DNA of 62,210 nucleotides, the filler included, from Basidiobolus meristosporus CBS 931.73 (Eukaryota > Fungi > Basidiobolomycota): assembly GCA_002104905.1 (NCBI GenBank). It is 4 parts of 4 records of this genome, joined end to end, with 100 filler letters (N's around TTAATTAATTAA, not from the genome) between each part and the next. Parts side by side here need not be neighbours in the genome. Positions count along the whole stretch, not along the records: positions 1 to 29,052 come from MCFE01000875.1; 3 more parts are not named here. One strand, 5' to 3'. The notes below the pieces were generated by a model that was not told the DNA's origin, searched no databases, and saw only the letters and a list, made by a program, of their open reading frames with translations. The stretch's first letter is position 1; each line of letters begins with the position of its first letter. Below are positions 887 to 29,052 of the stretch, one piece after another. The position numbers were made by a program, and so were the translations under genes.

Positions 887-1690
887 TGTGGTAGGGTAAA
901 CATACCTCCCACAGACAAACTTATTCATATAGTCATTATGATATACTTATCCATATTTTATCTTATCAGTATTATCCCATTCTTCTTTTGCCCATATTAT
1001 CAGTATTATCCCCATATGATGTTTACCCTGATTAGTTATTAGCATTAGTTATCCCAGATGTTATTCAGCTTTGAGATCAGTAGATGTATCTATATAAGGT
1101 AAGAACCTGTGTCAGTACCCATGACACATGACCTAGGTCTGTGTTACCATCCCTACCATTTCAATACCATATATGGTATTTCTATGTTGCACAGGTTTCA
1201 GACTACTGATTCCTGATTGGTTGAAAGTGCTGTGCCTTTAAGAACCTTCCAGGACATTCTTGGCATATTTTTAGCTCATAGTGATGTCATCAAGGATTCC
1301 ACTGATACCTAGAATCTTCTAGAACCTTGTCAGTGGTGATCACTTGGCAATCAGGAAAAGTATTTAAGGGAAAGCAATCCCTCATCAATAAATCATCCCT
1401 TCTATCAGGTATACTTCTACCTTATTGATTAGCAGTTGATTACTGCACCTGCCTTCAGCAGTACATCTCAGACCTGGCATCAAGGAGCTTTTCAGGGTAG
1501 TGCACAAGATACACAGAGGCCTTTGGAGACACTTGGAGCACCTAGGAAGCTAGAGAAGAAGGAGCTTTTACCATAATGACATATTGGCAAAGACACCAGC
1601 AGTTTAGACACAGAGGTTATTGCACCCATCAGACACCTCACACACCTTGAGTTGTGTAGCTTCTCCCACAAGTCCCTCTACACCACCATA
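887..1690 (+). repeat. B2 5' LTR (804 bp)
   Basis: Near-identical inverted copy at 4371-5174 and diverged copy at 31157-31961; followed by PBS. Confidence 0.9.
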
Positions 1691-1694
1691 TATT

Positions 1695-1711
1695 TGGCAC
1701 CCAATGTGGGG
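1695..1711 (+). promoter_or_regulatory. Primer-binding site, tRNA-Lys(CUU)-like
   Basis: TGGCACCCAATGTGGGG versus canonical tRNA-Lys1,2 PBS TGGCGCCCAACGTGGGG; both mismatches are CpG transitions; 4 nt after the LTR end. Confidence 0.75.
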
Positions 1712-1764: not shown

Positions 1765-3621
1765 ATGGATCTACCTTTACCTGGAATGCAAGGAACCCCT
1801 TTCTTTGATGGAACTAAAGTCAAAGCTTGCATCAAGAGGTGGGAGCTTTTCTGCAGAGCACCCAAATAACCTGAGGCCATTATGGCTGAAGAGATGCCCC
1901 CTTACAGCACTGATGAGATCATGCTCTCATTATATGAAAGAAATGATCTGCTGACAAATTGGACCCTCTTGAAGAGCTACTTGATTGATGAATATGGAGA
2001 GAGACAAGTTGACTACACACTTCAAGACTTGGAGAATTTTGCTTATGGCAAGTTTAAGCTGCTACCATTGAAAGAATACTTGAGTGGCCTTGAGCAAATT
2101 GGAGAGTCACTAAAAGCCCAAGGAGTTATCACTGATCTCACTTTATATGCCTATTGTCTCAGAGCACTACCAGAAGACCTGGTGAGAAGGATTGAAAACA
2201 ATCCTACTGTGAAAGCTATGAGTTCACTGCCTGAGTTTCAGTTAGCTAAGCAGATTCTACTTGCCCCTGAAGAAACCTCACAAATCAGAAAGCTTCTTTC
2301 AAGCTCAGCACAAAACCAAGATAGCCAAGACTTACTTAATTCTAGTAATCAAAGCACTCAGAATCAGGAGCTGACACAACAACTAGAGAAACTCTCTTTG
2401 CTACTTGCCAGCAAAGCATATGGTCAGAAGCCAGTAGAGAAAGAAGTCAAATATACATGCATGTGGTGTGACTCTGCCAACCATTCCAAGAGAAATTGCC
2501 AAGAGCTTCAATCATTACTATCTGCAGGTGATGTCCTATATAGTTCTCAGGGATACATAGTTAGTAAGCATGGTGACAAATTATCCACAGCATTTGGACA
2601 AGGAGGAATGAGAGTTCACTACAAGCAAGTCACCGCTCAGACAAGAAAGGTGCATCTCTATGAAGAGGAAGATCCTGACTACTTTGATCCAACTGAAGTT
2701 CTGAACTTTGCCTATGAGGACCCCAGAAAGGTCCAAGATCATATAGCTTCAATTTATGCTTCAAAGAGACACCATCCTGAAAAAATGGCTAGTCTAGGCC
2801 CAGCAGCAAAAGTACCAAGATGTGGGCCAGAAGTTGTGATTGAGAAGTGAGCATCACCCCCATTAATTTTACAAGAGTCTGCCAAGGCCAACAACTACCA
2901 CATGCAGCCTAGAATCAAGCAAAATGGTACCCCAGAGACTCTGACAAGTCATACACTAGGAAACAACATATCAATCAAGGTTGGAGAGCTACTCAGTGTA
3001 TCACCATCTGTAAGAAAGACTCTGGATGAGCACATCAGAATAAGAAAGCATCCAATTGAAGCAACTCAAGGTAACCAGGTCAGGACAATTCAAGGAAGCC
3101 AAGATACCAGTAAGCTGCATCAAAGCCAGAAACACTACTACTTAGTGGCAACTGCAACAACTACAGGAACTGTGCATAATCAAGAAATTGTATGTCATAT
3201 AGACAGTGAATCTGAGATATGTGTGATGCCTTTGGAGGCTTGGAAACAACTACCATGCAAAGACCTATTGCCCATAGACACCAATATCAATTGGAGCATG
3301 AAGGAAGCCAACTCAGGGCAATCAAAGCTTTTAGGAATTATTCACAGCTTCCCTCTGATCATTGAAAGAATACACCATGCAATCCCAGTATTCATTTGTG
3401 CAAAGGCTAACTTTGAGTTACTTCTTGGAAGACCATGGGAGGTAAAAGCAAGAGCAACTGCAGTGAACTACCCAGATGGTACAGCTTGGTATACTATATA
3501 CTCAGAGAGCCCAGGACTAACAGTAACCTTCTGTGGTGTGGACTCAAACAATATCCGATCAATGCCATCATGTAGATTTCTATCTCAAGAAAGGACAGGT
3601 GGCTTCATTGAGGAAGACTGA
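1765..3621 (+). pseudogene. gag: B2 gag-protease, disrupted
   Basis: ATG at 1765 gives MDLPLPGMQGTPFFDG (cf. family B APQFDG), then a frameshift into ORF 1882-2850 with CMWCDSANHSKRNC zinc knuckle. In-frame TGA at 2848 is probably CGA>TGA. PR motif CHIDSESEIC in 2902-3621. Confidence 0.85.
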
Positions 3622-4370
3622 GAGAGCACTTTGTTCTCCAAACTTACAGTGGTTAGCTAAAAAGTTCCCTGAAACTGTACCTCTACACCACCACACTGGT
3701 TCACCTTGATACTAAAGTTGCTCTTGACAGGGTTTTGCTGGCTTTGGGCCATGGTTGTCACTCCTTGATGCTGCTGGGCCAGGATGTTATAATCTGCCAC
3801 TTGAATGTTTAAGTTAGATCAGTTTTTAGTCAAATCATTTAGTTATATGTTTAGGTTATCAGTATACCAGAATTATCTATCAAATCAGTAGCATTAGTCA
3901 GCAAATGAAGCAGCAGGTCCTTATCAGACAGAAATTGATATATTCAATTGGATCTTATTGGGTGATAATGACGCATTCAAATGAGTCATCAGCCACAGCC
4001 TACATTAGGAAATAACATTAGTCAGCAATTGATCTTGCAAAATGTATATAAGGAGTTGCTGGAATCTCAATAAAGAGAAGTTCAAGTTTTAGTCAATACA
4101 ATACTGGCTAAACTCCCTATTTGCCTACAACTCTTATACTAAGACTTGTAGCATTGGTAGCAGTGATAACTGGAAATGTCCATCCTGAAGAAAGAAGAAG
4201 CCTCCCTCAAGATGTCCAAAAATCTCAAATGGAAGAATGTTATGCAACAAATCCTGGCCTAGCAGCAACAGTTACTCCAGATCCTTAGCCAACAGCAACA
4301 AGGAATGACTACCTTGACCCAAAGCCAGCAAAACCCTGTCAAGAGCAACTTTAGTGTCAAGGTCAACGGG

Positions 4371-5174
4371 TGTGGTGGTGTAGAGGTACTCCTGGGAGAA
4401 GCTACACAAATCAAAGTGTGTGAGGTGTCTGATGGGTGCAATAACCTCTGTGTCTAAACTGCTGGTGTCTTTGCCAATATGTCATTATGGTAAAAGCTCC
4501 TTCTTCTCTAGCTTCCTAGGTGCTCCAAGTGGCTCCAAAGACCTCTGTGTGTCTTGTGCACTACCCTGAAAAGCTCCTTGATGCCAGGTCTGAGATGTAC
4601 TGTTGAAGGCAGGTGCAGTGATCAACTGCTAATCAATAAGGTAGAAGTGTACCTGATAGAAGGGATGATTTATTGATGAGGGATTGCTTTCCCTTAAATA
4701 CTTTTCCTGATTGCCAAGTGATTACCAATGACAAGGTTCTAGAAGATTCTAGGTATCAGTGGAATCCTTGATGACATCACTATGAGTTAAAAATATGCCA
4801 AGAATGTCCTGGAAGGTTCTAAAAGGCACAGCACTTTCAACCAAGCAGGAATCACTAGTCAGAAACCTGTGCAACATAGAAGTACCATATATAGTATTGA
4901 AATGGTGGGGATGGTAACACAGACCTAGGTCATGTGTCACGGGTACTGATGCAGGTACTTGCCTTATGTAGATACATATACTGATCACAAAGCTGAATAA
5001 CATCTGGGATAACTAATGCTAATAACTATTCAAGGTAAACAACATATGGGGATAATACTGATAATATAGGCAAAAGAAGAATGGGATGATACTGATAAGA
5101 TAAAATATGGATAAGTATATCATAATGACTATATGAATAAGTTTGTCTGTGGGAGGTATGTTTACCCTACCACA
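4371..5174 (-). mobile_element. B2 solo LTR inside family A gag
   Basis: Inverted copy of 887-1690; flanks CGGG (4367-4370) / CCGG (5175-5178); family A gag resumes in register. Confidence 0.9.
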
Positions 5175-6366
5175 CCGGTACCATGGTTGAATCAATGAAA
5201 ACCTGGGAACTTGGCTCTTCCAGATTGAGGAAGCTTTCAAGGCTAAGGGAATTGATCCAGAAAGCAAGTTATATTATACAGCCTCTTACCTGGCAGATGC
5301 AGCTTTACAGTGGTACAACAACAAGATCAGGTCAGCAACCATGATGGGATGCTCTACAATCTCTACCTGGGATGAGTTTGTGCCAGAAATTTGGGATGCC
5401 TTTGAGCCCCCACACCAACAGACACTACTAAGAAGAAAGTTGAAGACACTCAGACAGAAAGGAATGGTTCAAGAGTACATCTATAAATATAGATATTAAC
5501 TTGGGCAAATTGAAAGAATGGACCCTCTTGATTAAGTTGAATACTTTGTTGATGGGTTGAAAGAAAGAGCTTGTAAGGAAGTGCATTATTGAAGACCTCA
5601 GACTATTGAAGAAGCCATCAAGATTGCCACTGACTATGACTCAGCTTTGTTTGGAGTTGGGAAGCCCACAATGACTAATCAGAGAGGCTACAATTACTAT
5701 GAAAGAAGACAATCAGAAGCAGTGCCAATGGAAATAGACGCTATGCAGAAAAATCCTACCTCAGAACAATGCAAGAAGAAAGGACTTTGCTTCAATTGCC
5801 ACCAGCAGAGACATATTGCAAAGTACTGCCCTCAGAGAAGAAGTGTCATGATCACATGACAACCATGAACACCCATGCCAAGTTTCAGCTTCCTAGCTCA
5901 ATTGCTAAGAGATTCCTTCTGGAACCTTCTACCACCTTCCAGAATGTTCCTGACCATTTCAAGCCATTGTTACACAATGGAACATTCCATGGAAGCTTTC
6001 CATTGTATTTTTCATAGTCTAGTACCATATATGGAAATACCAAGTCAAATGACCTAGTCACATGATCAGTTGACCCAATCCATTTCCCCATCCTGTCTCA
6101 GTGCCGTGTCATCTATGTCATTATCCCCAGCACCATTGCTGTGCCTCACCCCACAACCCCATTAGTATTAGCAAATATCTCTTGGCATCAGTATAGCCAA
6201 AAAATATGTATAGTTCTACCCCCCCTTAAGTATTCCTCAGTCTGATAAATACAGGTCTTGAATAAACAGCCTTGCCTTGAATCCTGCCTTGCCTTGATGG
6301 TCCACATCTAAGTCCTTTCCTGCCGTGCCTAGCTTTTCCTCCTGCCTTGTGTCTATTCACAACAGT

Positions 6367-6377
6367 TTTATCAGACT
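6367..6377 (+). promoter_or_regulatory. Self-priming PBS (Tf1 type)
   Basis: TTTATCAGACT is the exact reverse complement of AGTCTGATAAA at 6239-6249 within the LTR; no TGG-type tRNA PBS is present. Confidence 0.75.
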
Positions 6378-6427
6378 CTCCTGACTTACCTGTGGATCCC
6401 TGCCTTCTGCCCAAAGTTTGAAGAAAA

Positions 6428-6688
6428 CTTGTAAAAGGAATACTCACCGTAAGTATCACCCATCATCTTTCCCTAGTCTTGTCCTATAAAGGCAAAGATA
6501 CTTTATCTTTGTAAACTATTGGTCAAAGCTGCATTCACTTTATTACCCTGCTGGTGGAGTTTACAGTTGTAACAGTATTGGAAGCTTTAGTACAATACTC
6601 TATCAACCGACATTGAAACCAGTACCTTCTGAAGTGATGCTAACTTATTTAAGTTGGGGATTGTGGCTCAATAGTTGTATTCTTGACA
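6428..6688 (+). ncRNA. Candidate structured cis-acting RNA in the family C 5' leader, homologous to B/B' LTR U5
   Basis: Conserved blocks GGAATACTCA, AGGCAAAGATACTT, CTATTGGTCAAAGCTGCATTC, CCCTGYTGGTGGAGTTTACAGTTGT, GGAAGCTTTAGTACA, TAAGTTGGGGATTGT, TCAATAGTT are shared with the minus strand of 15728-15993, 21841-22107 and 24689-24954. Several stems show compensatory changes. Confidence 0.6.
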
Positions 6689-6769
6689 TACTAGTGGCTT
6701 TACAAACCCACAACCTAGTTTAGTATATTCCAGTATTCCTTGCAAGTTCATCTGCCTTCCTCTGCTACC

Positions 6770-7702
6770 ATGTCCAATCTAGAGCTGAACTTTGCCCAGC
6801 TCATGGCTGCCTTTACCCAACTACAGCAAGACCATGCAGACCTCAGAAACACTCTTGATCAGTTCCAGAACCAAAGTGTCCAGCAAACTAGCCATGTCCC
6901 AGTCTACCAAGAACCCAAGTATACTCCTGCTACCAAGTTCAATGGCTCTCAGAATGAATTCCGTGGCTTCATCAACATGATGAAGAACAATCTTGCACTC
7001 TAGCCCAACCGGTACCCCACTGACCAGGCCAAAGTTGGTTTCATCTCCAACCTGCTTACTGGTACAGCTCTCAAGTGGTTCTCCTCATTAGTGGAGACCA
7101 ACTCTCCCCTCCTCAGAGACTACCAAGCTTTTCTCACTGAAATGGAGCTAACATTTGGTAACTTTGACCAAGCCAGAACTGCTGCCAACAAGATCAAGAC
7201 CCTCAAGCAAGGGAACAAGCCAGCATCAGTCTACACCTCAGAATTCTGACAACTCTCCAGTGATCTCAGCTCCTGGGGTCAAGCAGCCTTGATTAGCCAA
7301 TTCCAAGATGGCCTCAATGATGAAGTTTGTGATCTGCTACTCACACTCCCAGATCCAGATACATTGGTTGAAGCTATGGACCAAGCAATCCGGTATGATA
7401 ACAGACTATTCCAGAAGAAGCAAAAGAACCGTCAAAGACACATTCCTGTTGCAGTCCCAGCCCCTCCTGCTTCCCAAGTCACTCCAGAAGATCCCATGCA
7501 GATTGATAGTGCCAAATACAAGAAACTATCAAAGAGTGAAAAGTCCAGACATCAACAAGCTAACCTCTGTCTATACTGTGGCCAACCAGGTAACTTTGCC
7601 AAGTCCTGCCCCAACAAGAAGTCCAGCTTCAAGCTGATGCAGTCCTCCAGTAACCAACCTGATTCAGATCTGCCGGGAAACTCCAATGTCCAGTTGCACT
7701 GA
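6770..7702 (+). pseudogene. gag: Family C gag with two premature stops
   Basis: ATG at 6770; stops at ~7001 (TAG) and ~7248 (TGA); FQDGLNDEV motif and CLYCGQPGNFAKSC knuckle. Confidence 0.85.
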
Positions 7703-11220: not shown

Positions 11221-14200
11221 GTGTCATGATCACATGACAACTATGAACACCTATGCCCAGCTTCAGCTTCCTAGCTCAATTTCTAAGAGATTCCTTCTGG
11301 AACCTTCTACCACCTTCCAAAAAGTTCCTGACCATTTCAAACCATTGTTACACAATGGAACATTCCATGGAAGCTTTCCATTGTATTTTTCATAGTCCAG
11401 TACCATATATGGAAATACCAGGTCACATGACCAAGTCACATGATCAGTTGACCCAATCCATTTCCCCATCCTGTCTCAGTGCCGTGTCATCTATGTCATT
11501 ATCCCCAGCACTATTGCTGTGCCTCACCCCACAACCCCATTAGTATTAGCTAATATCTCTTGGCATCAGTATAGCCAAAAAGTATGTATAGTCCTACCCC
11601 CCTTAAGTATTCCTCAGTCTGATAAACACAGGTCTTGAATAAACAGCCTTGCCTTGAATCCTGCCTTGCCTTGATGGTCCACACCAAAGTCCTTTCCTGC
11701 CGTGCCTAGCTTTTCCTCCTGCCTAGTGTCTATTCACAACAAGAAGTGGACACCAGCCATCAAGAGCCTTTAACCATATTGAGGTCATGGAGCATGGTAA
11801 CATGCAGGATGAACTTGAAGAAGACTCAGAACTCACCTTCCATATGACAGAAGAATACCCATTCCAGATGACCTCAAACTCAGGAAAGCTATTATACTTG
11901 AATGGAGAATTTGATGGAGTACCTTCCAGGATCATGGTTGACTCAGGAGAATCACATGAGTACATGTCAGAGCATATGAGCTACTATCTGCCAGACTGGA
12001 TTTTCACTTGGTCAATTCCAGTGTGCGTGAAACAAGTGAACTTAGCATGACAGATTTCTGTAGAGCACTAAGGAAAGGCACCCAGATGTTTCTCAGGGCA
12101 ATATTACAGGAGGATTTCTCTACTCAAGTACCCCAGAAAATACAGACTCTTTTGCAGGAGTATTCAGACATATTTCCAGAAGAGCTTGTAAGCCTAGCAC
12201 CAGTCAGAGACATGGATCATACCATTGAAATAGGAAATAGCCCTCCAGTCATTAAGACACCTTACAGAATGAGTCCATTGGAGTTGGAAGAGATGAAGAG
12301 ACAAATAGATCAGTTAGTGGAGCAAGGATATATCAGACCCAGCAAGTCACCTTGGGGAGCACCAGTACTTTTTGTGAGTTAGAAGGATGGAACACTCAGA
12401 ATGTGCATTGACTACAGAGCCCTCAAATCATTTACCATGAAGAATAAGTGCCCCCTACCTTGGATTGATGAGCTCTTGGACCAACCCAATGGAGCCACTA
12501 TTTCAGCAAGATTGACCTTGTGTCAGGATACACCCAGATTAGATTGAAGCCAGAAGGCATCCCTAACACAGAATTCAGGACCAGATATGGACATTAAAAT
12601 TACTTAGTCATGAGTTTTGGCCTTACCAATGCCCCTGCAACATTCATGACCCTGATGCAGACTGTCTTCCAGGAGTACTTAGACAAGTATGTTATAATCT
12701 ACCTAAATGATATATTGATATACTGCAAGACAGAAAAGGATCACTTGGTGCACATTGAAAAGGTTTTGAAGAAGCTAAGAGAGAACAAGCTTTATGGCAA
12801 GCTACCCTAGTGTGAATTCTTCAAAGAACATGTCAAATATCTCGGACACATAGTGACTAGCACAGGAGTAAACTTAGACCCTAAGAAGGTTGAAGTTATC
12901 AAGAATCTGAAGCAGCCCCATAGCATATCAGAGCTCAGATCATTTCATGGAATGTCTTCCTATTATTGGAGATTTGTCCAGTCCTTTGCAAGTATACCAG
13001 CCCCTTGAACCAATATCCTCAAGAAAGACAATACCTACAAGTGGGACATAGCTTGTGAGACTGCCTTCCAGATGCTCCAGAATGAACTTGCTAAGCTACC
13101 AAGCCTAAGAATACCTGACTTCAGGAGAAAGTTCACTCTGTGCACAGATGCTTCAGATTTGCAATTGGTAGAGTGCTGAGCCAAGAACATGAGGAAAAGG
13201 ACTACCCTGTTGCCTTCAAATCCAAGAAACTGAACTCAGCAGAACAAGCTATCTAGTACATGAGAAGGAGATGCTTGCTATAATACACTGTTTGAAGACA
13301 TGGAGATGCTATATTGAAGGAGCCAAATGTACTGTGCAGACTGATCATGCCTCCCTCATGTATATACTTACTTAGAAGGTTCTCTTTAGCAGAATGCCAA
13401 GATGGAGTGAATACATTCAGCAATTTGACTTGGAGATTGTCTACTGCCTTGGAAAAAACAATACAGTTGCTGACACCTTATCAAGATTAGATCAAGTTGC
13501 ACAACTCAACTTGGTTCATGAATCAGATTGTCTTAGCCTATCACCAAAGTACTTGGAGGACCAAGCCATTCCTAATGAGGTGGATGAAGATATCAAGAAG
13601 ATAATCAGGGATGAAGCCAGCAAATTTGTAGTTCAGGATGAAATACTCTACTGAATTGTTGATGGAAGCCCTATTGCCTAATGCCCTTGTGTTTCTTGCC
13701 TGAATTTAATTCATAAGCTACACAATGGATATGGACATCTTGGAATTAAAGAAACCCATAGCCTTGTGAAAGCCAGAGCATGGTGGCCCAGAATGAAACA
13801 TGACATTGAGAAGCTAGTGAAAACATGCCCAAGTTGCCAAATCAACCAAGGCCAACCACAGAGAGTTGCTGAACTCTTTCCCTATGAGCCTGTAAGACCA
13901 TTTGAGAGATGGGGAATTGACTTTATTGGAAGACTGCCAACTACCAGAAAATCCAACAGTTGGATCCTAGTAGCAATTGACCATGACACTAAATGACTAG
14001 TGGCTAAAGCTATACCTATAGCCAGTGAACAAGAAGTTGCAAGTTTCATCTACCATGAGATCCTTATGAAGTTTGGATCCCCTGTAGAGACTCTATCTAA
14101 TATAGGTGTAAACTTTATGGCAAAGACATTGGAAGCTTAATGCATGGATGTGATCCAAGAATTCCAAGAGATATCACATACCCAAAGCTTACAGACACCT

Positions 14201-16684
14201 TGGAAGATGAGCTCAGTCAGCCAAGTACACACCAGCAACTGGAACAAAAATACCAAGAGGCACAGATCAAAGTATCTCAATGTGCTGAAAAGATGAAGCA
14301 GAGATTCAATAAGTCTATAGCACCTGAAGCATTGACAATTGGGAACTTTGTGTTCCTGAGAAACAACACTTGGAAGAAGTTTGAGCCACAATGGACAGGA
14401 CCATTCAAGATCATCAGTAAATGTCCATTTGCAACTTACCAACTAGTGGACAAACAAGGCAATATCCAGTAAGACTTAGTGCATAGGGACAGACTCAAGC
14501 TTGCAAGACTTGCTGATACTACTGAGCCATCAAGATATTGGTATCACATGAAAAGAGATTCAGGAGAACCCTCTCAACTATAGCAGGGGAGAATGTCACA
14601 ATATGCCACTGGAATGTTTAAGTTTAATCAGTTTTTAGTCAAATCATTTAGTTATATATTTAGGTTATCAGTATATCAGAATCATCTATCAAATCAGTAG
14701 CATTAGTCAGCAAATGAAGCAGCAGATCCTTATCAGACAGAAATTGATATATTCAATTGGATCTTATTGGGTAATGATGATGAATCAAATGAGTCATCAG
14801 CCACAGCCTACATTAGGAAATACAATTAGTCAGCAATTGATCCGGAAAAATGTACATAAGGAGCTGCTGGAATCTCAATAAAGAGGAGTTCAAGTTTTAG
14901 TGAATTCAATACTAGCTAAACTCCCCATTCCTCTACAACTCTTATACTAAGACTTGTAACATAGATTTGTTGCAAAGCATTCTTCCATTCTTAACTTGTG
15001 GACATCTGGAGAGAGGCTACTTCTTTCTTCAGGAGGGATGTTTCTTGCTATTGCTGCTATCAGTGTACAAGTCTTGTCATAAGAGTTGTAGAGGAATAGG
15101 GAGTTAAGCTAGTATTGTATTCACTAAAACTTGAACTGATCTTTATTGAGGTTCAAGCAGCTCCTTACATACATTTTGCCAGATCAATTGCTGGCTAATT
15201 GTATTTGCTAATGTAGGCTGTGGCTGATGACTCATTTGATTGCATCATCATCACCAAATAAGATCCTACCTAATATATCTATTTCTGTCTGATAAGGATC
15301 TGGCGATTCATTTGCTGACTAATGCTACTGATTTGATAGATAATACTGATATACTGATAGGCTAAAGATATAACTAGTTGATTTGACTAAAAACTGATCT
15401 AACTTAAACATTCAATTGCAGATCATAACAAAGGCACTGTCATAAATACCATCAAAGTAGCCCTTTTTCTTAGTTATTTATTGTGGTTGCTATCAGATAT
15501 ATTGGAAATGACTGCACTACTGATAATGAGTGCAGTACTTCATAGCCTCACATTACTTGGTGAACGGTGTGGTGGTGTATAAGTCCAAAGGGCAAAATAC
15601 GGCCAACACTTCTCAAGTGTGAATGTGTGTGGGGTGTTCACTGGGTGCGATAACCTCTGGCAAAAGCTTGCTAGGAATACTGGGTCTTTTATCTAATCTA
15701 ATGTGATGGGGGATAAAGCCTCAAGCTTGTCAAGGGAAAACTATTGAACTACAATCCCCAACTTAGTTGGCGTCTTAACAAAAGTTTATAATGGCTTCGA
15801 CGTCCTTTGAGATGACAATGTACTAAAGCTTCCAAAGTCAAAACAACTGTAAACTCCACCAACAGGGACTTGATAAGAATGCAGCTTTGACCAATAGTTA
15901 CAAAGACTGAAAAGTATCTTTGCCTGTACAAGAACAAACTTGGGAAAACAAACAATATAATAAAATATACCTACTCTGAGTATTCCTCACAAGTAGTGCC
16001 TCCAAGGTCAGTTGGCTGTCAGCGCGGTTTCCTGGGAGTATCGTCAGGTCTGAGTCAGAAAATAGTGGTAATAGGTAGCGGTGATCTCACTAATCAATAA
16101 GTTGGAATATTGGAAGAGGGATGATTTATTTTAAGGGATAGCCTCCCTTATATACTTTTTTGCTGCTCAATTTCTTGCTAGAAAATACTTTCCGGAAGTT
16201 TCCAGAAGGTAGTAGACAACCAATCATGTCTTTGTGTACTAAAAATAGCGCAAATTCTTGGCGGATTGTTCCATGAGACATAGTAGCACCTAGCCAATCA
16301 GGTAGTGGTAACATGAAACCTCTGCGTCATGTGGTTGCCTCTTATGGTAGTGAGATGGGGGATTATGAAACCAAGATGGTCACGTGACATGGGCACTGTT
16401 GGGGTACTTGCCTTATAAGGTAACTATCTTATCTTGGCATCTCGGCAAGGAATAAGAATAGCTTGTGCAATGGGTTAATAGGGACAAATAGTTTGTCAGG
16501 TTGCATAGTAATAATCACATAGACAAAAATAGGAAATATTGCAAATTTGGGATGATAATAATATAGGCGGGGTAATCCTTTTTAGGGAAGTGAATGCATA
16601 AGAATGAGCACATCTGCCTGTGGGTGTCACTGTGACCCCACTACATCCACCCCCCTCTCAGCTTTGAACTCAGGTCAAAGCAAA

Positions 16685-21676: not shown

Positions 21677-23029
21677 AATATGTGGTGGTGTATAAGTCCA
21701 AAGGGCAAAATACGGCCAACACTTCTCAAATGTGAATGTGTGTGGGGTGTTCACTGGGTGCAATAACCTCTGGCAAAAGCTTGCTAGGAATACTGGGTCT
21801 TTTATCTAATCTAATGTGATGGGGGATAAAGCCTCAAGCTTGTCAAGGGAAAACTATTGAACTACAATCCCCAACTTAGTTGGCATCTTAACAAAAGTTT
21901 ATAATGGCTTTGACGTCCTTTGAGATGACAATGTACTAAAGCTTCCAAAGTCAAAACAACTGTAAACTCCACCAACAGGGACTTGATAAGAATGCAGCTT
22001 TGACCAATAGTTACAAAGACTGAAAAGTATCTTTGCCTGTACAAGAACAAACTTGGGAAAACAAACAAATATAATAAAATATACCTACTCTGAGTATTCC
22101 TCACAAGTAGTGCCTCCAAGGTCAGTTGGCTGTCAGCGTCGGTTTCCTGGGAGTATTGTCAGGTCTGAGTCAGAAAATAGTGGTAATAGGTAGCGGTGAT
22201 CTCACTAATCAATAAGTTGGAATATTGGAAGAGGGATGATTTATTTTAAGGGATAGCCTCCCTTATATACTTTTTTTTGCTGCTCAAATTCTTGCTAGAA
22301 AATACTTTCCGGAAGTTTCCAGAAGGTAGTAGACAACCAATCATGTCTTTGTGTACTAAAAATAGCGCAAATTCTTGGCGGATTGTTCCATGAGACATAG
22401 TAGCACCTAGCCAATCAGGTAGTGGTAATATGAAACCTCTGTGTCATGTGGTTGCCTCTTATGGTAGTGAGATGGGGGGTTATGAAACCAAGATGGTCAC
22501 GTGACATGGGCACTGTTGGGGTACTTGCCTTATAAGGTAACTATCTTATCTTGGCATCTTGGCAAGGAATAAGAATAGCTTGTGCAATGGGTTAATAGTG
22601 ACAAATAGTTTGTCAGGTTGCATAGTAATAATCACATAGACAAAAATAGGAAATATTGCAAATTTGGGATGATAATAATATAGGCGGGGTAATCCTTTTT
22701 AGGGAAGTGAACGCATAAGAATGAGCACATCTGCCTGTGGGTGTCACTGTGACCCCACTACAGCGGTGTTGTATAAGTCCAAACTGAGCTATAAGAGCTA
22801 CTAGGAGATAAACTTGGGCAACTTAAGTCTGAACTTGCAAAAGATGAATATATAACAGAGAGTATTTTTGTGTCATGTGAACTATATAGATTCAAGACAA
22901 AAAAAGATGTAGTAGAAGCCCATGCAAAAGGTATGCACAAAGATAAACAAAAGCTGTATAGCAATGTTGTTGAACTACTCTCCCAACTGCAGTTGCAACT
23001 GAGTAACAGGTCTTATACCTAGTACCCTC

Positions 23030-25600
23030 ATCATCCTTTTGGTGGTGTTAGTGGCTTGTTGGAATTATATGAGTATCCATGTACTCAATGGCTTGTTGTC
23101 TTGTTCTAAGCTGCTCATTAAAGGTCTTCCTAATAGATGGGGATACACTCATGATCTCTCCAACCAGCAAAGTGAGGTTTTGTTTCAACCACTTCTCAAT
23201 GATCAGATGAGGGCTTGAGTAGCTTGCAATCTTTGAGGTCATCTGAAAGTGAGGTAATGGTTCTTGGGTGGTCAGCATACTGGGCCTCATGTCAATGGCA
23301 ACTTCAGGCTCTTCAGATTGTGGTATTATGAGGATGTGTTTGACAGCTTCTTCAAGAAGGTGTCTTTTGGCAGCAAAGGCATCAACTTCATATTGTCTGT
23401 TGTCAGGACTGCTTGAGCTCACTGTAAGACTCCCAATAGGGGCATCAACTGTAATCTTTCTGGTTGCTGAGTTGGAAATCTGGCAAAGGGCTCTCATACC
23501 TCCTCATTGGAAATTGGTGGGGATCCTTCTTCCTTCCATGTCGGCAAGCATTCCATCAGCATCCAACTGTACAGTTTCTTCTTTGAGCTGTTGACTAAGC
23601 TTAGAGTATTCTCTTTGGGCATGCTGAGTGGAATTACACCTGATGCAGTGTCTGGGCCAAGGTTTTTGGCTCTCAGTAGTTATTTCAACTGAGCCATCAA
23701 TCTTGAGGGCTAGCTTTTGCGGCTGTTTGGCAAGTAGGTGATTCTTTTGGTAGTATAGGTTTGTTTGTCAGCAACAGCACTCCTTCACTCCTTGCTCAGC
23801 TGGTCTGGCAGATTAGACTTCCGGAGTCTCATAAAGATGGACATCTGTTTTGCTTCTAGGAGAACATGTCTCATCTCTGCAAAGCATGGAATGCTGGGCT
23901 TGTCACCCTTGGCTGCATGTATGTCCACTTTTTTTGTCATGTCTTGGGGAAGTCCTTGTGCAAGGTAAAGTGCCATGGTAAACTCAGTAATAGCTTGGGA
24001 ATCTAGGAGTGGCTTGGCCATGTCTTCATACTGCCAAATGAACTCTACATGTGGTTGCTTGGAAAGTCCAGTTCTTCTAAAGTGGCTCAGATCTTCAATT
24101 CCATAGCTTATTGGGGGTCTACCATACTTGGCTTGTAGGTAGATCTTCATTAAGGCCCAGTCAGTGAGTATTTTCCCTGTCTGAGAAGCTTGGTGGTATC
24201 TTTAGTGCAGTGGTAGGGAATTCTTCAACCATTTCTTGTTCAGAGAGGCTGCACATCTTGCAGAGCTTCTCCCACTCAAATAAGAAGCTTTCCACATTCT
24301 TCCCATCAAACTCTGGGGCTCTGTGTGAGTGTGGTAATGGCACAGAATTCATTCTGTGTAGGTAGGTTGGTGTTGTAATCTTGATAATATTGGTAATCTC
24401 CTTACAATAAGTGTGTAATGGCTCAAATCTTGGGGTAAATCTTGTTGGGTCCTAAGGAGCTTGTATGGGCCCCACATGTTGGGTGCTAAATATGTGGTAG
24501 AGTATAGTGTAAAGGAGAAATATCTCATATGTTGTAGAGTATAAGTGTAAAGGAGAAATATCTCCAACACTTCTCAAGAGTTTTGTGTGTGGGGTGTTCA
24601 CTTGGTGCAATAACCTCTGGCAAAAGCTTGCCAGGAATACTTTGGTTCTGTCTCTAATCTAATGTGATGGGGAATAAAGCTACAAGCTTGTCAAGGGAAA
24701 ACTATTGAGCTACAATCTCCATGTTAGTTGGCATCTTAACAAAAGTATTAGCTGGGTTCAGTATCCTTTGAGATGACAGTGTACTAAAGCTTTCAAAGTC
24801 AAAACAGCTGTAAACTCCTCCAGCAGGGACTTTATTAGAATGCAGCTGTAGTCAATAGTTACAAAGACAGAAAAGTATCTTTGCCTGTGCAAGAACAAAC
24901 TCAAGAAAGAATCAAATACAACAAAACATACCTAATCTGAGTATTCCTCACAAGTAGTGCTTCTATGGTCAGTTGGCTGTCAGTGCAGCTTCCTGGGAGT
25001 GTCCTGTAGTCTGGAATTGGAAGTTCAGGTAGCAGTAGGTAGCAGTGATCACACCAATCAACAAGTTAGTATACTAATAATAGGGATGATAATTTATTGT
25101 GGAGGGATTGCCTCCCTTATATACTTTTCTCACTGGTTAGGTGATTACTAATCAAGGTATTCCAGAAGGTTCCAGTGGTCAAATAGAAATATTATTGACA
25201 TCCAAATGAGCTAAGAATGCTCTAAGTAGGTGCCAGAAGGTTCTAAGAGGCACAGCCCCCCAACCAATCAGGGATCAATATATTGGAGCCTGTGTAACAT
25301 AGGAATACCATATATGGTATCAAAATGGTAAGGATAGTGACACAGCTTGATCATGTGTTACAGGTACTGGTTTGGATACCTGCCTAACATAGAAGCACTT
25401 ACATCCAGTAATCTAACTTAAAGTGAGGGACAACTTATGCAATAAGGTAAGCAGGTGTGATAGTCAGCCAGCTTATGGGATAATACTGATCAAGTAAGAC
25501 AAATGGGATAAAACTAATATAAGGGTAGTAGAAAAATAGGGAAGTAGAAACTATGGGAATGAGCACATCTGTCAGTGGATGTCACTGTGACCCCGCTTCA
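23030..25600 (-). mobile_element. Family B' Ty3/gypsy, truncated (5' LTR 24493-25600, PBS, decayed gag)
   Basis: Collinear with 20213-22762 but diverged; multiple stops and frameshifts in gag; no RT or 3' LTR. Confidence 0.85.
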
Positions 25601-25770
25601 ATGTCCTCAACTCATCTGTTAAGCTGTTCCATTGATTAGTCATCTGAGATCTATCCAACTACTTAGCAGTTTCCAAGACATCAGCTGATTATTGAAGCAA
25701 TTTCTCATTTATCTTATGCACCTATGAACACCCCAACATATTCAATGAGTCCAGTCACTTGGTGCTTACT
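25601..25770 (+). repeat. Dispersed ~170-bp repeat, second copy 28881-29052
   Basis: Both start ATGTCCTCAACT and end ...TTGG..CTTACT, with clear collinear similarity; identity unknown. Confidence 0.7.
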
Positions 25771-28700: not shown

Positions 28701-29052
28701 TGGAACCATGTGTTGTGCATCAACATTTAACACTTAGCCAACTTCACTCCATTACAAAATCTAGTACTCTAACTGATTTTCCCTAACCCAAACATAACTA
28801 ATCCCTGTTATGGTTTATTTTATCACTTCTCAGAAGCTATTTTTTAGCTGTCAAACCTGATCAATTTTTGAGTGGTCATTATGTCCTCAACTGATCTGCT
28901 AAGCCTTTCCAAAGGATTAGTCATCTGATATCTATCCAACCACTTAGTAATTGTCAAGATATTAGCTGATTAATGATGCAATTTCTCATTTATCTCACGC
29001 ACCTATCAACACCCCAACAGATTTCATTTAGTCCAGTCTCTTGGCACTTACT

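Follow-up and report, generated by a model that had tools for sequence, protein, structure and literature searches.

The predicted untranslated 5' RNAs of two very distantly related LTR retrotransposon families in Basidiobolus meristosporus contain the same stretch of about 325 bases, closed at its ends by a putative helix. We located this cassette in the leader of a chromovirus-like Ty3/gypsy element (element C), in both LTRs of a second element (B), and in the LTR of a truncated relative of the latter (B'), all of which lie in the window, i.e., the whole 62,210-nucleotide stretch of DNA that was analyzed. We lean, if narrowly, toward the interpretation that the cassette is an independently folding and selectively maintained leader RNA domain of approximately 325 nt, read in the sense direction and swapped between lineages by template switching, with dimerization or packaging as its most likely role.

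The window reads as a nest of LTR retrotransposons. Element C is bounded by TG..CA LTRs that are 96% identical (5' LTR, 5844–6364, plus strand; 3' LTR, 11222–11741), is flanked by the target-site duplication AGAAG (5839–5843 and 11742–11746), and contains a polypurine tract before the 3' LTR. Its Pol comprises PR-RT-RNaseH-integrase together with an SH3 domain of the Tf2 type and the first part of a chromodomain. Element B is encoded on the minus strand between LTRs that are 98.9% identical (5' LTR of 1082 nt, 21681–22762; 3' LTR, 15568–16645); it also has a polypurine tract, together with a 1353-aa DUF4100-PR-RT-RNaseH-integrase frame that lacks a chromodomain. The full gag-pol of B is intact, whereas the coding region of C has recently decayed. 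B' is represented by an LTR at 25600–24530 (minus strand). Given that their Pol proteins share only 23% identity, C and B belong to deeply separated Ty3/gypsy lineages, and their Gag proteins are unrelated. The two elements also differ in their primer sites. That of C, TTTATCAGACT (6367–6377, plus strand), is over 11 nt exactly complementary to AGTCTGATAAA (6239–6249), located in the LTR approximately 30 nt downstream of a TATA-like motif. Complementarity between LTR and primer site is the arrangement typical of self-priming in the Tf1/sushi group, and C is probably primed in this way. In contrast, B carries a tRNA-type TGG primer site, TGGCACCC, at about 21676, after its 5' LTR. The deep divergence of the carriers, asserted in a preliminary description of this DNA, is therefore borne out by both Pol identity and primer-site type.

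Several further features of this nest were recorded. Element C, with its AGAAG duplication, interrupts the zinc-knuckle part of the gag frame in another Ty3/gypsy element (5647–5843 and 11747–12400), the protease and RT of which resume after 11747; repeats at 3781–4154 and 14590–14962, which are 91–92% identical, may be LTR parts of this interrupted element. The truncation point of B' lies in gag at about 22978. Immediately before the B 5' LTR, a 21-nt stretch (22783–22763, minus strand) resembles a B-type LTR end (tttggacttatacaacaccgc compared to tttggacttatacaccaccaca), and B has no clear target-site duplication; these two features suggest that B-type elements recombined here instead of one simply inserting. 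LTRs of a related type, B2, lie in opposite orientation at 1340–1700 (plus) and 4360–5174 (minus), around gag-like and protease-like frames (1882–2850 and 2902–3621), in a layout unlike that of a simple intact element. Between 26144 and 28640, segments are repeated at a spacing of about 1404 nt with 73–80% identity (26144/27514, 26550/27955, 26690/28094, and 27118/28531), a pattern suggestive of another element that was duplicated long ago, in tandem or nested form; a further pair, 25634–25742 and 28915–29023, is 87% identical.

We compared the whole of C with the whole of B using blastn. A single match was returned, pairing 6468–6746 with 22060–21780 and with 15947–15667 (72% identity over 291 columns, E 1e-33), and this is the sole nucleotide similarity between the two elements; the B' copy matched C with an E value of 3e-21. 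An nhmmer profile built from the four copies gave one hit per copy in the window (E 1e-90 to 1e-123), with neither a fifth copy nor a stand-alone one. The complete unit spans 6426–6748 in C (323 nt, plus strand), in the 5' leader between primer site and gag ATG, and, on the minus strand, 21780–22107 in the B 5' LTR, 15667–15993 in the B 3' LTR, and 24627–24954 in the B' LTR. Over the whole unit, identity is 73% between C and B, 69% between C and B', and 85% between B and B'. In window coordinates, the two B copies and the B' copy are reverse complements of the C copy and align cleanly plus to minus; a plus/plus alignment of the four copies was discarded as spurious, since the B-type copies run in reverse complement. 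Because B and B' are encoded on the minus strand, as the B open reading frames confirm, and C on the plus strand, every copy is in the sense orientation of its host element. The preliminary description had reported a segment of about 265 nt common to C, B, and B', always in sense, with the remainder of B and C dissimilar at the nucleotide level, and had placed the two B copies and the B' copy correctly. The shared segment withstood this reanalysis but its length did not: the unit extends over 6426–6748 and ends in inverted repeats that had gone unmentioned. The cassette is real and more sharply defined than first described.

An inverted repeat of 15–17 nt is situated exactly at both ends of the cassette in all four copies. 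In C, the 5' arm is AACTTGTAAAAGGAATACT (6426–6444, plus strand) and the 3' arm AGTATTCCTTGCAAGTT (6732–6748, plus strand), the latter ending 21 nt before the gag ATG at 6770; the corresponding arms in B are CTTGTGAGGAATACT and AGTATTCCTAGCAAG. The helix that these arms form has predicted pair probabilities of 0.8–1.0 in C, B, and B'. Their 9-mer core, AGTATTCCT, occurs 10 times in the window compared to 0.48 expected, and eight of these occurrences are cassette arms. A further AGTATTCCT copy is found at 6229–6237 in the C LTR, directly 5' of AGTCTGATAAA (and likewise in the 11606–11626 region); this third copy could pair with the 5' arm of the cassette (6436–6444) as an alternative to the 3' arm.

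Terminal inverted repeats are also what a nested non-autonomous DNA element (MITE-like) would have, had it entered the C leader and the B LTR in separate insertions. We nevertheless judge this origin very improbable. No target-site duplication was found at the cassette edges in C (gaagaa/AACTTG at the 5' edge and CAAGTT/catctg at the 3' edge) or in B. The B2 LTRs, which we compared over 1340–1690 (plus strand) and in a second copy at 4720–4370 (minus strand), are homologous to B in the TATA region, the LTR end, and the primer site, but contain approximately 76 nt where B contains approximately 330 nt between the homologous flanks. As had been observed before, the cassette is absent from B2, and the difference between B2 and B is a replacement without target-site duplication rather than a clean insertion. 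A search for a vestigial cassette in B2 gave an ambiguous alignment, and its lack of the cassette would be compatible with either gain or loss in the B lineage. Also contrary to the behavior of a mobile DNA element, all copies are in sense relative to the host element and the interior structure is strand-asymmetric and G-U rich. No stand-alone copies were evident among public contigs; of the loose ends inside the cassette, those in the listed minority match B-type cassettes rather than unrelated flanks, which makes this a weak point.

The closing helix could alternatively join the splice sites of a spliceosomal 5' UTR intron that makes up all or most of the cassette. GTAAGT in C (6449–6454) and GTAGGT in B directly follow the 5' arm, TAG/TTAG (6716–6723 in C; ATTAGATTAG in B) just precedes the 3' arm, and CTAAC in C as well as a conserved CTTGAC may serve as branch sites, although these are weak. 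On the other hand, the GT column of the donor is TT in B', where a GTATGT follows 5 nt further on; long invariant blocks and interior structure are not expected of an ordinary intron; and both the length of approximately 270 nt and the distance from branch site to acceptor would be unusual for a small-intron genome. We accordingly attach little credence to a leader intron.

In C, both the LTR end (6364) and the primer site precede the cassette. In B and B', by contrast, the cassette is part of the LTR, after the TATA box but before the primer site. The observation that the two lineages carry it on different sides of the primer site was therefore upheld. The B cassette begins approximately 130 nt downstream of the predicted start (TATA at about 22270) and ends approximately 100 nt before the LTR end (21681), while the predicted start of C lies approximately 190 nt upstream of its cassette. 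The leaders measure approximately 530 nt in C and 700 nt in B, with two upstream ATGs each. An AATAAA is conserved about 25 nt downstream of the TATA box GTATATAAGGGAG in B, B', and B2 (22238–22275, 25095–25135, and 1355–1400). As a polyadenylation signal it would fall at or immediately before the predicted transcription start, which suggests that R is very short and that in B and B' the block probably falls in U5, in which case the cassette would be present once per genomic RNA. We infer that the cassette is transcribed, and where the transcript starts and is polyadenylated, from these TATA and AATAAA motifs. A packaging domain should reside in the transcribed leader upstream of gag and occur once per genomic RNA, and with the transcript ends so predicted this is where the cassette is found.

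The cassette does not behave as a coding sequence. Its indels are of 1, 3, 5, and 9 nt, substitutions are spread evenly over the three codon positions, and B' has stops in all frames; we therefore rejected a protein-coding cassette, and the blockwise conservation with frame-breaking indels reported earlier was reproduced. Between C and B, invariant blocks of 10–15 nt persist despite 27–31% divergence. Between B and B', identity per 60-column window is 78–90% in the cassette (85% overall) and 78–88% in gag, compared to approximately 50% in U3. The Jukes-Cantor distance is 0.33 for the C-B cassette pair and 0.04 for the C LTR pair, indicating that the exchange is old relative to these insertions.

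We modeled the secondary structure with RNAalifold on the four copies, which represent three independent sequences (C, B, and B'). The consensus contains 82 pairs, arranged as the closing helix, a second long-range helix, a hairpin at 6492–6512, a long-range pairing of 6514–6533 with 6662–6676, two intermediate helices, and a hairpin at 6573–6600. The first hairpin pairs GCAAAGAU with AUCUUUGU (6492–6512, plus strand), with an invariant stem and a loop of 5 nt in C (in helix coordinates) and 8 nt in B. The long-range pairing brings the 5' strands AACUAUUGG (6514–6522) and GCUGCA (6528–6533) together with the 3' strands UGUGGC (6662–6667) and UCAAUAGUU (6668–6676), all on the plus strand; within it, a G-U pair of AACUAUUGG/UCAAUAGUU becomes A-U in B'. 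The second hairpin (6573–6600, plus strand) carries three adjacent compensatory stem pairs between C and B beneath an invariant 12-nt loop, GAAGCUUUAGUA (6581–6592). This loop contains the palindrome AAGCUU, although a 6-nt palindrome would arise in a 12-nt loop by chance about once in ten cases. Three pairings proposed in the preliminary description, namely the GCAAAGAU/AUCUUUGU stem, the AACUAUUGG/UCAAUAGUU pairing, and a stem of differing sequence under a near-invariant loop, are thus all present in the model.

Scored on the alignment from which it was derived, the consensus structure pairs in 94.8% of cells, compared to 34–45% when partners are slid by 1–3 columns, and includes 10 pairs with double changes compared to 0–2 in the slid controls. 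We also compared it to column shuffles that keep gap and conservation patterns. In the sense direction, the consensus energy was −59.9 kcal/mol against −32.5 ± 4.2 kcal/mol in the shuffles (z −6.5, reached by none of 100), whereas the reverse complement gave −41.9 against −27.5 ± 4.2 kcal/mol (z −3.4). Such a difference between strands is in keeping with the abundance of G-U pairs and speaks for an RNA that is read in the sense direction. RNAalifold counted nine compensatory pairs compared to 4.1 ± 2.0 in shuffled alignments, a number reached by 3 of 200. Covariation, proposed earlier as a check, hence exceeds the shuffle controls, but its excess is modest and, with three independent sequences, marginal. 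In single-sequence folds, C, B, and B' agree only on the closing stem, and when the consensus structure is imposed on C, its energy is about 35 kcal/mol less favorable than that of the best fold of C itself, partly because MAFFT offsets the C 5' arm by 2 nt. We consider the predicted closing helix to be solid. The AACUAUUGG/UCAAUAGUU pairing and both conserved hairpins are likely, and the remaining interior helices of the model are provisional. A packaging domain should also have conserved secondary structure in the sense strand; the cassette has such structure, with marginal covariation and with interior helices that are not robust in single-sequence folds.

One aligned position (6690–6695; the 21844–21839 region in B; columns ~289–294) reads ACTAGT in C and AAGCTT in B and B', i.e., the letters have changed and self-complementarity has been kept. 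In the consensus model it pairs with 6471–6482, and the kept self-complementarity may simply reflect this helix.

Palindromic hexamers bear on whether the cassette instead acts at the DNA level, as a downstream enhancer or promoter element or as a site for a dimeric factor that controls transcription. AAGCTT is present in all copies, ACTAGT in C stands opposite AAGCTT in B at the position just mentioned, and in both families no more than a few hundred bp separate the TATA box from the cassette downstream of it. The compensatory changes, together with G-U pairs that can form in the sense strand only, speak for RNA instead, and the predicted distance from start site to cassette differs between the families (~190 nt in C and ~130 nt in B). 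A DNA-level regulatory module hence seems quite improbable to us.

Recombination between co-packaged retroelement RNAs is common, and the cassette might accordingly be a functionless relic of one such event, copied once by template switching, with its structure a by-product of the inverted repeat and of base composition. The limited number of lineages (three), the marginal covariation, and the inconsistency of interior helices among single-sequence folds would all agree with a relic. Set against this are the 10–15-nt blocks that remain invariant at 27–31% divergence, the preservation of the B-B' cassette to the same degree as gag while U3 decayed to about 50%, the retention of the cassette by both families in many copies, and the strand-specific consensus energy (z −6.5). 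On this evidence we regard a relic as unlikely and favor an RNA domain under selection.

To place the cassette beyond the window, we considered public contigs aligned to 5600–7400. Many C-family pieces among them pass from the LTR end or from the primer site into the cassette, and no recurrent joint that removes it was found there; the pieces derive from two runs of one sample and one run of another study, and their depth was not used as copy number. Since C-family contigs from two studies carry the cassette, its presence in C is not a one-off capture by a single copy, the outcome that the preliminary description had set against its own proposal. The majority of the C family has the letter of B at 6571 and 6607, from which it follows that the C copy analyzed here carries private changes.

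In line with the preliminary remark that it was not recognized as a known family, Rfam 15 gave no matches in the whole window at the gathering threshold, and permissive scans returned only noise (E 3.5–9.8; 13–15 bits compared to thresholds of 42–88), with no match to a ribozyme (hammerhead, HDV-like, or twister) or to snRNA, snoRNA, SRP, or retroviral cis-element families. No tRNA was found by a tRNA scan. Exact-pattern scans were based on the two most conserved block pairs. The first pair produced no matches in metagenome contigs; the six matches to the second pair in those contigs cover only the pattern itself and were dismissed as chance. Equivalent scans of viral and prokaryotic genome contigs were likewise without matches. 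B gag had no detectable homologue in a protein search. The best Pol homologues, which are mostly metagenomic with a few named sources (an alga, an amoeba, a chytrid, and Smittium), are 55–61% identical for C and 42–45% identical for B, and the cassette was absent from six of their contigs that include upstream sequence. The nearest available relatives consequently lack it, and the suggestion that it is a cassette of retrotransposon lineages in general was not supported; as far as seen, it would for now be peculiar to this genome and those closely related to it. The related proposal of a transferable structured RNA module fared better in part: the sharing, the non-coding nature, and the sense-strand fold agree with it, while the modest covariation and the cassette-free relatives temper it.

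Within the interpretation that we favor, the cassette would have moved between the lineages as a unit, through two template switches by reverse transcriptase between co-packaged heterologous RNAs, with the stable closing helix marking the switch junctions. Such template switching would explain both the replacement without target-site duplication and the differing side of the primer site. The domain would then serve in dimerization or packaging, with the invariant AAGCUU apical loop making loop-loop contacts between two RNAs; by sharing this loop, C and B RNAs could pair and be co-packaged, itself a precondition for exchange. This role is suggested by the leader location, the self-complementary AAGCUU in an invariant loop, and the co-packaging that exchange requires. 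It is weakened by the roughly one-in-ten chance of the palindrome and by the unrelated Gags of C and B, given which one would not readily expect them to share a packaging signal specific to Gag. A role in binding a host factor, for translation or nuclear export, would fit the transferability of the cassette equally well.

A bolder reading, which we think rather doubtful but worth stating, is that the cassette is a portable RNA domain through which unrelated autonomous LTR retrotransposons either pair via the AAGCUU loop or recruit the same host factor. If so, the families would co-package and exploit each other's particles, and the cassette would be a "common currency" leader module that spreads horizontally from one retroelement lineage to another in the same genome, comparable to the swapping of IRES modules between RNA virus families. 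To our knowledge, with Ty1, Ty3, and retroviruses set aside, little is known about the cis-acting leader RNAs of LTR retrotransposons, which are assumed to be lineage-specific. With C and B differing in Pol, Gag, priming strategy, and the side of the primer site on which the cassette lies, the case would show that leader domains are exchangeable as modules. It would also offer a handle on heterologous co-packaging, on recombination between retroelement families, and on selection for leader structure. Were a host factor responsible, it would point to a host dependency common to many elements in a very repeat-rich genome.

Several known systems resemble the cassette in part. Like HIV-1 DIS/Psi, MLV Psi, and the 5' UTR pseudoknot and PAL sequences of Ty1, it is positioned in the leader between transcription start and gag, and forms a predicted sense multi-helix domain, retained across copies, with a 6-nt palindrome in an apical loop. 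Unlike these, it has no sequence or Rfam match; it is common to two autonomous lineages with unrelated Gags, whereas each of the known signals is confined to a single lineage and the parasites of that lineage; and its side of the primer site differs between carriers, upstream in B and B' and downstream in C. Non-autonomous LTR elements share leader sequence with autonomous partners, as in Dasheng/RIRE2 and the LARD and TRIM elements. There, too, dissimilar elements have cis-acting leader or LTR-end sequence in common, presumably for access to the same particles, but both cassette carriers are autonomous with full gag-pol (intact in B, recently decayed in C), and they share a single internal leader domain and not their LTR ends, primer sites, or polypurine tracts. 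Structured 5' UTR modules have been swapped between unrelated RNA viruses, such as the HCV-like IRES of some picornaviruses, and the MPMV CTE and IAP RTE are export elements that bind host factors. These are likewise discrete folded RNA domains moved by recombination, and the parallel would work if the cassette is host-factor-mediated, although they bear no similarity to it, as the negative Rfam scans indicate. Finally, Sirevirus retrotransposons contain highly conserved non-coding motifs despite fast-evolving surroundings, conserved by descent within one lineage (PMC2829016). The cassette similarly represents conserved non-coding sequence of LTR retrotransposons, but it crosses lineages and is a single contiguous, helix-closed unit. 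It would thus be kin to known cis-acting leader domains of retroelements and to known cases of modular recombination, and what appears to set it apart is its crossing of two autonomous lineages.
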